A DNA stretch of 54,997 nt, from positions 62,001-116,997 of the forward strand of contig JAXLNO010001399.1 in the NCBI GenBank assembly GCA_038087875.1, written 5' to 3'. Source of the DNA: Malacoraja senta (lineage: Eukaryota). Below the pieces are notes generated by a model. That model saw nothing but the letters and a program-made list of their open reading frames with translations, ran no database searches and was not told the origin of the DNA. Below, piece after piece: positions 48,101 to 51,870 of this stretch. A program made the position numbers and the translations under genes. The first letter of the stretch is position 1. Every line of letters starts with the position of its first letter.

Positions 48101-50760
48101 GGACGCGCAGACACACACAGACACACGCAGACACACACGGATGCTGGCAGACACACACGGACGCGCAGACACACATGGACGCGTAGACACACACGGACAT
48201 GCGCAGACACACACAAACGCCGGCAGACACAGACGGACACGCACAGGGACACACGGACGCGTGCAGGGACACACGGATGCACAGACACACACGGACGCGC
48301 ACAGGGACACACGGACGCGCGCAAGGACACACGGATGCACAGACAAACACGGACGTGCGCAGGGACACACGGACGCGTGCAGACACACACGGACGCGTGC
48401 AGAGACACACGGACACGTGCAGACACACACGGACGCTGGCAGACACATACGGACGCGCGCAGACACACACAGACGCGCGCAGGGACACACGGATGCTGGC
48501 AGACACACACGACACGCGCAGGGACACCCACGGACGCTGGCAGACACACACGGACGCGCGCAGGCACACACGGACGCTGGCAGACACACACGGATGCGCG
48601 CAGGGACACATGGACACGCGGACGCGTGCAGAGACACAGGACGTGCGCAGGGACACACGGACGCGCGCAGGCACACACGGACGCTGCCAGACACACACGG
48701 ACGCGCGCAGACACACACGGACGCGCGCAGGGACACACGGACGTGCGCAGGCACACACAGACACGCGCAGACACACACGGATGCACAGACACACACGGAC
48801 GCGCGCAGGGACACACGGACGCGCGCAGGGACACACAGACACGCGCAGGCACACACGGACGCGCGCAGAAACACACAGACGCTGGCAGACACACAGGGAA
48901 CCACGCAGACACAGACGGGCGCGCGAAGACACACACGGACGCGCGCAGACACACGAGGACGCTGGCAGACACACGCGGATGCTGGCAGACACACGCGGAC
49001 GCTGGCAGACACACACGGACGCGCGCAGACACACACGGTCGGTGGCAGACACACACGGACGCACACAGGGACACACGGAAGCTGGCAGACACACACGGAC
49101 GCGCGCAGACACACACGGACGCGCGCACACACACACACGACGCGCAGAGACACACGGACGCTGGCAGACACACACGGATCACGCGCAGACACACACGGAC
49201 ATGCGCAGACACACACGGACGCGCAGACACACATGGACGCGCAGACACACACGGATGCTGGCAGACACACACGGACGCGCAGACACGCACGGACGCGCAC
49301 GGACGCGCGCAGACACACACGGACGCGCGCAGACACACACGGACGCTGGCAGACACACACGGACGCCCGCAGACACACACGGACGCCCGCAGAGACACAC
49401 GGACGCGCAGACACACACGGACGTGCGCAGACATACACGGACGCGCAGACACACTCGGACGCGCGCAGACACACACGGACGCGCGCAGACACACACGGAC
49501 GCGCAGAGACACACGGACGCGCGCAGACACACGGACGCGCAGACACACACGGATGCGCGCAGACACACACGGATGCGCAGACACACACGGACGCGCAGAC
49601 ACACACGGACACGCGCAGAAACACACGGAAGCGCGCAGGGACACACGGATGCGCACAGACACACACGGACGCACAGACACACACGGACGCGTGCAGACAC
49701 ACATGGACCGCGCAGACACACACGGACGCGCTGACACACACGGATGCTGGCAGACACACACGGACGCGCACAGACACACATGGACATGCGCAGGCACACA
49801 CAGACGCGCAGACACACACGGACGCGCACAGACACACACGGACATGCGCAGACACACACAGACGCGCAGACACACACGGACGTGCAGACACACACGGACG
49901 CGCAGACACACACGGAGGCTGGCAGACACACACGGACGCGCAGACACGCACGGACGCGCGCAGACACACACGGACGCGCGCAGACACACACGGCCGCTGG
50001 CAGACACACACGGACGCGCGCAGACACACACGGACGCCCGCAGAGACACACGGACGCACAGACACACACGGACGTGCGCAGACATACACGGACGCGCAGA
50101 CACACTCGGACGCGCGCAGACACACACGGACTCGCTGACACACGGACGCGCGCAGACACACGGACGCGCAGACACACACGGACGCGCGCAGACACACACG
50201 GACGCGCAGACACACATGGATGCGCAGACACACACGGACACGTGCAGACACACACGGACGCGCACAGGGACACATGGATGCGCGCAGACACACACGGACG
50301 CACAGACACACACGGACGCAGACACACACGGACGCGCAGACACACACGGACGCGCGCAGACACACACGGATGCGCAGACACACACGGATGCGCAGACACA
50401 CACGGACACGTGCAGACACACACGGACGCGCGCAGGGACACACGGATGCACGCAGACACACACGGACGCACAGACACACACCGACGCAGACACACACGGA
50501 CGCGCGCAGACACACACGGACGCGTGCAGACACACACGGACGCGCAGACACACACAGACACAGTAACAATGTGTAAGACATGGTGTAACAAGGATGGAGC
50601 TGTGATTTGAGGACAACTTACTCTTGGTGGGATCGTAGCCGCTCTTCCCCGCTGTAAAACACACGGACGCGCAGACACACACGGACGCGCGCAGACACAC
50701 ACGGACGCACAGACACACACGGACGCGCGCAGACACACACGGACGCGCAGACACACAGAC
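45120..50760. repeat. Intronic satellite, 20-nt unit GGACGCGCGCAG(AC/GG)ACACAC, about 5.6 kb, interrupted by the duplicated exon block
   Basis: Near-perfect units 45160-46140, degenerating rightward, with recurring higher-order blocks. Confidence 0.98.
50622..50651 (-). CDS. MHC class I cytoplasmic Tyr exon, copy B (GKSGYDPTK)
   Basis: Near-identical copy 201 bp from copy A, with both splice sites intact and one coding change (AAT to GAT). Confidence 0.65.
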
Positions 50761-50822
50761 ACAATAACAATGTGTAAGATATGGTGTAACAAGGATGGAG
50801 CTGTGATTTGAGGACAACTTAC

Positions 50823-50852
50823 TCTTGGTGGGATTGTAGCCGCTCTTCCCCG
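50823..50852 (-). CDS. MHC class I cytoplasmic Tyr exon, copy A ((A)GKSGYNPTK)
   Basis: 30-nt phase 1/1 exon with gtgttttacag acceptor and A|gtaagt donor. GYNP motif resembles shark class I tails as I recall them. Confidence 0.8.
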
Positions 50853-51870
50853 CTGTAAAACACAGACACAGTTGGTGACGAGGACCCGCATCAGCTGGGT
50901 CTAAACACACAGATTCACCAGCTGCCCCGTCACCTCTCAACCCAATCACACAGCGGACACGGGCTAGGCTGTGACCGGGAAGAGTGGGACAGGACGCAGG
51001 TCAGGGCTGGGCCCGGCCCCGACACCGGGACACCGGCTCCCCGACAACTAAACACCCGCACAGAGACGGCCCGGCCGGGGGGGGGACGTGGTCAAGTTGG
51101 GGGAGAGGGAAATGGACGGAAGGGAGGGTGAGATAGGGGGAGGGACGAAGAGGTGAGGTCGGGAGGGGTGGGAGGGAAATGAAGGGATGAGGGAGAACGA
51201 GGGGAGGGAGGGGGGGGGAGAGTGGGGACGTGGAGGAGCAGGCAGGAAGGGGAGATGGAGGGGGGAAGGGAAGTTGGAGGGGAGGTCGAGGGGAGATGGA
51301 GGTGGAGATCGAGGGGGAGGCGGGGAAGTTGGACTGGAGGAGAGGGAGGGTGAGAGGAGGGTGAGGGGAGGGAGGAGAGATGGAGGTGGAAGAGTGGGGG
51401 GCAGATTGAGTTTTACTCGGTGTATCCGCCGGGTCAGGTCACGGGGTGGAGGTGCCCGGAGGATGATGCTGACATGCGGCGGGCGGGAGGTCACGTTGAC
51501 CCGGGCAGAGCTGCGGTTTGAGGGAGGAGGATTGGAGAATAATCCCCCCTCCCCCGGGGGCAGCAATGTGTTCTCTCTGCCCAAGGGGTGGGGGAGCAGA
51601 GCCGGAAGCTGCCAGGTAGAGAATCAGCGGCCCAGAGCTGGCAAATGGGAGCATTGACCACGGGCCCGTCGGGCAGACACGGACACCGTGGGCCGAAGGG
51701 CGTGATACTGTGTTGTCTGTCCCCCAACCCCACCTACAGTGACACTTGAACCCGGGGAGAGAGAACGGAACAACGGGGCAGAAGGAGCGGGCGGAGGGAG
51801 GTTGAGGCAGGGGTCAGGGGGGTGGGAGGATACGGAGCGGACGTCCCTCCACTGTCTCCCCCACTCCTAC

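Follow-up and report, generated by a model that had tools for sequence, protein, structure and literature searches.

Tandem duplication of a tyrosine micro-exon beside an expanded minisatellite in a putatively degenerating skate MHC class I paralogue

The window analysed here, 54,997 nucleotides (nt) of the skate Malacoraja senta (assembly GCA_038087875.1, contig JAXLNO010001399.1, positions 62,001 to 116,997 of the forward strand), carries on its minus strand the 3′ part of a major histocompatibility complex (MHC) class I heavy-chain gene, in which the small exon encoding the cytoplasmic-tail tyrosine is present in two tandem copies. In the direction of transcription, and in window coordinates, the gene model begins with an open 264-nt alpha3 exon (52485-52222), whose translation is a C1-set immunoglobulin (Ig) domain with both conserved Ig cysteines. 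The 105-nt exon for the connecting peptide and transmembrane (TM) segment (51975-51871) aligns with the TM region of skate class I proteins and ends with ...YWKKKQ in phase 1. It is followed by a 1018-nt intron (51870-50853), tyrosine exon copy A (50852-50823; 30 nt, GKSGYNPTK), a 171-nt intron (50822-50652), tyrosine exon copy B (50651-50622; 30 nt, GKSGYDPTK), an intron of 5.67 kb (50621-44954) and the last coding exon (44953-44850), which reads TSECGKTHQTPLLQPE... until a TAA stop codon at 44852-44850. On the 5′ side, the CT-rich simple-sequence intron between alpha2 and alpha3 (52488-54997, minus strand) extends to the end of the contig. The contig (116,997 bases) stops at the last base of the window, 2.5 kb upstream of alpha3, and the alpha1 and alpha2 exons of the locus lie beyond it. 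Because the contig ends inside the CT-rich repeat, this repeat is probably what caused the assembly break. The same intron includes a tandem array of a unit of about 21 nt, ctcaccgtctccccctcaccg..., at 52540-52800 (minus strand).

Sequence similarity identifies the gene as an MHC class I heavy chain of skates (Rajidae), and it belongs to a family with many paralogous copies. The best match of the 88-amino-acid alpha3 translation among solved structures is 6lup_A, described as 'MHC class I protein' (E 4.6e-20), with hundreds of further class I chains also matched. A search of protein collections finds 95% identity to the MHC class I antigen M4R434 of Rostroraja eglanteria, and identity to class I models from Leucoraja erinacea and Amblyraja radiata is 91-92%. 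Matches to PF00129, the alpha1/alpha2 family, fall on other contigs only. Beyond the 91-95% identity of alpha3, the locus has in common with known skate class I genes the TM end ...YWKKKQ, the tail exon AGKSGYN(P/A)TK and the order alpha3, TM, 30-nt exon and last exon, and its single-pass TM segment and short multi-exon cytoplasmic tail are colinear with skate class I proteins. In the normal skate tail, as represented by proteins P0001 and P0005, the TM end is followed by AGKSGYN(P/A)TK and then by a TSER...SSNSSAPA end and a stop codon; the tail end of P0005 is TSERGENSSNSSAPA, and P0001 has RRKK in place of RGEN. Whereas these proteins have a single tyrosine exon and the TSERGENSSNSSAPA end, the studied locus has two exon copies and a frameshifted last exon.

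Exon-7 skipping is the well-known splice variant of the mammalian class I tail, and we know of no natural duplication of mammalian exon 6. Judged by position and structure, the skate 30-nt exon is the counterpart of that mammalian exon: it is in phase 1/1, lies directly after the TM exon, and supplies the sole tail tyrosine, one in each copy. In both lineages, this tiny exon with the only tail tyrosine (Tyr320 in mammals) precedes a serine-rich exon, and the skate serine-rich end corresponds to mammalian exon 7 with its conserved serines (Ser332/Ser335). The two exons differ in length (33 nt in mammals, 30 nt in skates) and in motif, with YXXA in mammals and YNPT or YDPT, which have no bulky hydrophobic residue at +3, in skates. 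The mammalian tail is modular exon by exon (PMC4950430), and its conserved phosphosites include Tyr320 and the exon-7 serines (PMC12518231). That the YNPT or YDPT tyrosine acts as a sorting signal in skates we infer only by analogy.

The presence of a 201-bp tandem duplication in the assembled sequence is confirmed. A repeat search finds two 201-nt copies on the minus strand (A, 50659-50859; B, 50458-50658), and Tandem Repeats Finder (TRF) reports a period of 201, 2.0 copies and 92% matches. Each unit comprises the 30-nt exon with its donor, preceded by 12 nt of acceptor sequence and followed by about 64 nt of conserved intron and then about 95 nt of satellite. In the intron between the two exons, 72 nt are unique sequence and 91 nt are satellite, ahead of an 8-nt ttttacag acceptor. 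Both exons use an identical tgtgttttacag acceptor and caaga/gtaagt donor (the slash marks the exon boundary) and are in phase 1/1, so that any combination of A and B keeps the reading frame. Translation of the spliced TM, A, B and last exons gives ...YWKKKQ-AGKSGYNPTK-TGKSGYDPTK-TSE..., with a predicted A-B mRNA junction of ...ACCAAGA/CGGGGAAGAGCGGCTACGAT. The locus thus has the architecture of a tandem exon duplication, in that two neighbouring homologous exons match in length and phase and their splice sites are intact. Within the non-satellite core of the unit (104-106 nt), the copies differ at 3 positions, all transitions. Copy A matches the family consensus apart from 2 private intron changes, and copy B matches it apart from 1 private non-synonymous change, AAT to GAT (Asn to Asp) at base 50634. 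Three differences in 104 nt suggest that the duplication is fairly young.

These results bear out much of what the initial annotation had proposed for this stretch, namely an MHC class I gene with a tail exon resembling mammalian exon 6, a 201-bp duplicated block whose two exons have intact sites and keep frame when both are included, and a breakpoint on an acaca microhomology with the satellite. All of its junction coordinates are correct. Its argument that differences between the copies speak against a stitching of reads also stands, given the 3 differences and a junction that is unique in the genome.

A search of the species' own assembly (1.94 Gb) with the 106-nt unit as query returns 14 other loci at 85-98% identity. 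The initial annotation had suggested looking for the duplication in paralogues. The tyrosine exon proves to be single in all 14 and in the Leucoraja erinacea gene, and the duplication is therefore private to the studied locus in this comparison. The coding sequence of copy A is that of most paralogues: GKSGYNPTK is encoded by 10 of the 14, variants by the other 4, and the Asp codon of copy B by none. A search of database proteins for a doubled tail motif, made with the TM and tail of P0005, returned only the query. Identity among paralogues is 92-98% in a block that spans about -110 to +76 relative to the exon (window 50747-50962) and includes the 3′ 110 nt or so of the intron preceding copy A, compared with about 80% for other flanking intron. 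This pattern suggests either splicing-regulatory elements or local gene conversion. That the locus is a haplotig of another contig is ruled out; its introns are only about 75-84% identical to those of every other locus, and it is therefore a distinct paralogue.

Could the second copy have been made by the assembler, through mis-stitching of reads from two paralogues or haplotypes in this repeat-rich, unplaced 117-kb contig? In favor of this are the small size of the contig, its simple-repeat end and the extensive duplication of the family to which it belongs. In addition, two other paralogues (C3683 a and b) have units only 1 nt away from copy B, and comparison of the 104-nt unit across the family reveals no derived site common to A and B, which makes a phylogeny of this unit uninformative. 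Independent reads lend no support, as only short DNA unitigs were obtained: the runs that contain the sequence (X1, X2 and X16) are unitigs over introns that fit several paralogues and include no splice joints. No unitig piece settles the duplication junction, and their joints and loose ends are explained by the edges of paralogous satellites, such as the C3415a satellite end. On the other side, a 30-nt string spanning the satellite-to-acceptor junction occurs once in the assembly with up to 2 mismatches allowed and in no paralogue, so an assembler would need a chimeric read to create it. The GAT codon of copy B is likewise found in no other copy, the 201-bp event is well within the length of any long read, and both flanks continue the same locus. 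Because the junction is novel and the GAT codon private, we consider an assembly artefact unlikely.

The sequence around the breakpoint points to the adjoining minisatellite as the source of the duplication. The intron after copy B is nearly all GC-rich minisatellite with units of 18-20 bp (plus-strand unit CGCGCAGACACACACGGACG), forming an array of about 5.4 kb (45150-50559; the gene runs on the minus strand). The intron following the tyrosine exon is about 5.7 kb at this locus versus 0.3-1.1 kb in the 14 paralogues and about 280 bp in L. erinacea, whose intron is thus about 20-fold shorter. The satellite of almost all close paralogues starts directly after the same intron segment of about 70 nt (...cacattgttactgt), and L. 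erinacea has a short version; exon and satellite were therefore neighbours before the event. At all 14 other loci, caccaactgt(c/g)tctgtgttttacag precedes the exon, and the satellite unit ccgtgtgtgtctgcg is similar to the pre-acceptor sequence of all paralogues, actgt(c/g)tctgtg. At the studied locus, the copies share only tgtg and ttttacag at the breakpoint (acaca on the plus strand), and the satellite stretch that separates them opens with the 18-20 unit-length pattern that the array after B has, and then drifts.

We hypothesize that replication slippage or microhomology-mediated misalignment produced the duplication. A tgtg(t)ctg-like string just upstream of the acceptor may have paired with a look-alike in the GT-rich minisatellite, about 70 nt downstream of the exon. 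Misalignment between two such sites 201 bp apart would have carried along a piece of the acceptor, the exon, the donor, the intron and satellite as a single block. Such an event would resemble other minisatellite-associated, microhomology-mediated tandem duplications, in that the pre-acceptor tract and a satellite unit are identical over 4-5 nt at the breakpoint and the array is strongly expanded at the locus. It would differ from them only in that the duplicated segment happens to hold a complete micro-exon.

A further feature of the locus that bears on its function lies downstream of the duplication. We aligned the last coding exon from 16 genomic copies, comprising the studied locus and 15 paralogues. 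All 15 paralogues read ...gagcgcggggaaaac... (core cgcggggaaaac), which encodes TSERGENSSNSSAPA and a stop codon. The studied locus alone reads ...gaatgc-gggaaaac..., with a 1-nt deletion in the G run at 44940-44942. The deletion shifts the frame to TSECGKTHQTPLLQPEVGQ... (TSECGKTHQ...) and moves the stop codon 57 nt further downstream. Because all tail exons are in phase 1/1, the conserved end cannot be recovered by any combination of A and B, and every isoform, with 0, 1 or 2 tyrosine exons, would terminate aberrantly and lack the conserved serine-rich end. In the assembly sequence, this frame-disrupting change is private to the locus relative to the 15 paralogues and to skate proteins. The alpha3 and TM exons are open and have canonical AG/GT sites, which speaks against pseudogene status. 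From the frameshift and the other signs of instability, we infer that the locus is probably degenerating or a pseudogene. The growth of the satellite, the private 1-nt deletion and the private changes in the conserved block of both copies are consistent with an unstable locus under relaxed constraint.

The two tyrosine exons also differ in their apparent competence for splicing. Copy A keeps the pre-acceptor region of the family, in which CTGAT at -38 and CCAAC at -19 resemble branch points, and if the locus is transcribed, this exon should splice like those of the paralogues. Copy B retains only 12 nt of native acceptor sequence, with satellite upstream, and has lost its native branch-point region. 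No adenine precedes its acceptor from -4 to -113, no AG occurs back to -149, and the nearest canonical branch-like site is CTTAC at -123. Because this acceptor is without a nearby branch point, copy B would be expected to be included poorly or variably in any transcripts.

These observations bear on the proposal, made in the initial annotation, that alternative inclusion of A and B yields tails with 0, 1 or 2 tyrosines that tune endocytic sorting or cross-presentation. Several features are consistent with the proposal. The acceptor and donor cores of the two exons are identical and every combination remains in frame through their shared phase, the A-B intron, at 171 nt, has sufficient length for splicing and offers the CTTAC site and an AG-free tract, and the strong conservation of the exon and its -110 to +76 flanks relative to other intron is typical of regulated micro-exons. 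In mammals, moreover, the exon-6 tyrosine matters for trafficking and cross-presentation (PMC12518231). An A. radiata model reads ...WKKKQASERGEN and lacks exactly the tyrosine exon, as judged from its source label (isoform X2) and its sequence. If this annotation of exon skipping is taken at face value, a choice between tails with 0 and 1 tyrosine needs no duplication. The trafficking switch is nevertheless not supported by the locus itself, where the last exon is frameshifted as in no other copy, so that all isoforms lose the serine-rich end, and where copy B is without its native branch-point region. A search among sequencing runs found no RNA run containing the locus, the duplication is absent from the 14 paralogues and L. 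erinacea, and the YNPT and YDPT motifs, with no bulky hydrophobic residue at +3, would have a sorting role by analogy only. We therefore regard a functional exon duplication of this kind as improbable. We give equally little credence to the more specific outcome in which transcripts of the locus include both 30-nt exons, at least in some cell types, to yield a class I chain with YNPT and YDPT modules and a novel C-terminus.

Tandem exon duplication is an established source of alternative splicing, and the skate locus shares with documented cases the adjacent homologous exons of equal length and phase that arise by local duplication (PMC9013439, PMC9741552). This architecture might also permit mutually exclusive use, in which each mRNA includes either A or B and the tail with one tyrosine comes in Asn and Asp variants. 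However, a 171-nt intron sets no steric exclusion and inclusion of both exons stays in frame, so nothing would enforce exclusivity, and the objections raised by the frameshift and the branch point apply here too. Furthermore, documented functional events are mostly ancient and conserved (PMC9741552) as well as mutually exclusive, whereas the skate duplication is young, private to one paralogue and known from genomic sequence alone. Mutually exclusive use is thus highly improbable.

Taken together, the evidence favors a genuine tandem duplication of fairly recent, repeat-driven origin, most likely a neutral by-product in a skate class I copy that is degenerating. We assign this reading a probability of roughly 0.6. 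Several points weigh against it. Expression of the gene is still conceivable, given intact alpha3 and TM exons whose splice sites are good, and with alpha1 and alpha2 off the contig, its integrity is judged on the part from alpha3 to the tail. Both the duplication and the 1-nt deletion come from the assembly, and the deletion, lying in a G run, could reflect an error of the consensus. The sister relation of A and B is drawn from their position and not from phylogeny. Finally, the distal CTTAC at -123 could act as the branch point for copy B across the AG-free, A-poor tract; distal branch points with long AG-free tracts exist for some regulated exons.

The event falls within known kinds, joining a class I gene with a tandem exon duplication at the edge of a minisatellite. 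As the evidence stands, it documents the instability of the 3′ ends of skate class I paralogues, in the form of satellite expansion, exon duplication and frameshift, and it cautions annotators against modelling the studied copy as a normal class I gene. If both exons were included in transcripts, the locus would represent a lineage-specific change in the dosage of a class I sorting or phosphorylation signal, made by minisatellite slippage. It would then amount to a natural experiment in which the dosage of the conserved tail tyrosine is varied, within a lineage that is among the oldest of jawed vertebrates, and to a clean, young example of a minisatellite that creates a new alternative micro-exon.

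Other class I sequences in these skates have peculiarities of their own. The assembly holds at least 88 PF00129 matches, with many near-identical alpha2 exons on separate small contigs, and the class I-like family in it is very large and fragmented. On C3415 (L006/L007 and L032/L036) and C1072 (L010/L011 and L040/L041), class I 3′ ends consisting of TM, tyrosine and last exons occur as outward-pointing inverted pairs 3-4 kb apart, which are either local inverted duplications or fold-back assembly artefacts. A paralogue on C4283 (L027, about 9400-9480, minus strand) has alpha1 through alpha3 on one contig and shows an apparent frameshift in alpha1, with GSHSLRYLYTGVTPG followed by LGVPEFTAVGYVDE in the next frame; it is likely to be another class I pseudogene or to reflect a homopolymer error. 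In L. erinacea, the low-quality model P0006 (LOC129693405) has the last class I exon in a different frame (...GKLNKLLCSSLR) and joins it by splicing to a further downstream exon (AAVCRAARN...). A counterpart of this downstream exon lies in the window at 43900-43950 (minus strand), after an acceptor near 43947. The family may have an alternative 3′ exon here, or the model may be mistaken.

The remainder of the window includes a stretch of 377 N at 37616-37992, either a gap or a masked stretch, and two neighbours of the class I gene. An open reading frame (ORF) at 798-1391 on the minus strand resembles the first exon of a TRIM gene, with a RING domain (zf-C3HC4_4, E 1.2e-12) and a B-box. On the plus strand, an ORF of 294 amino acids at 16599-17483 matches rhodopsin-family seven-transmembrane (7TM) receptors with an E value of 1.8e-18.

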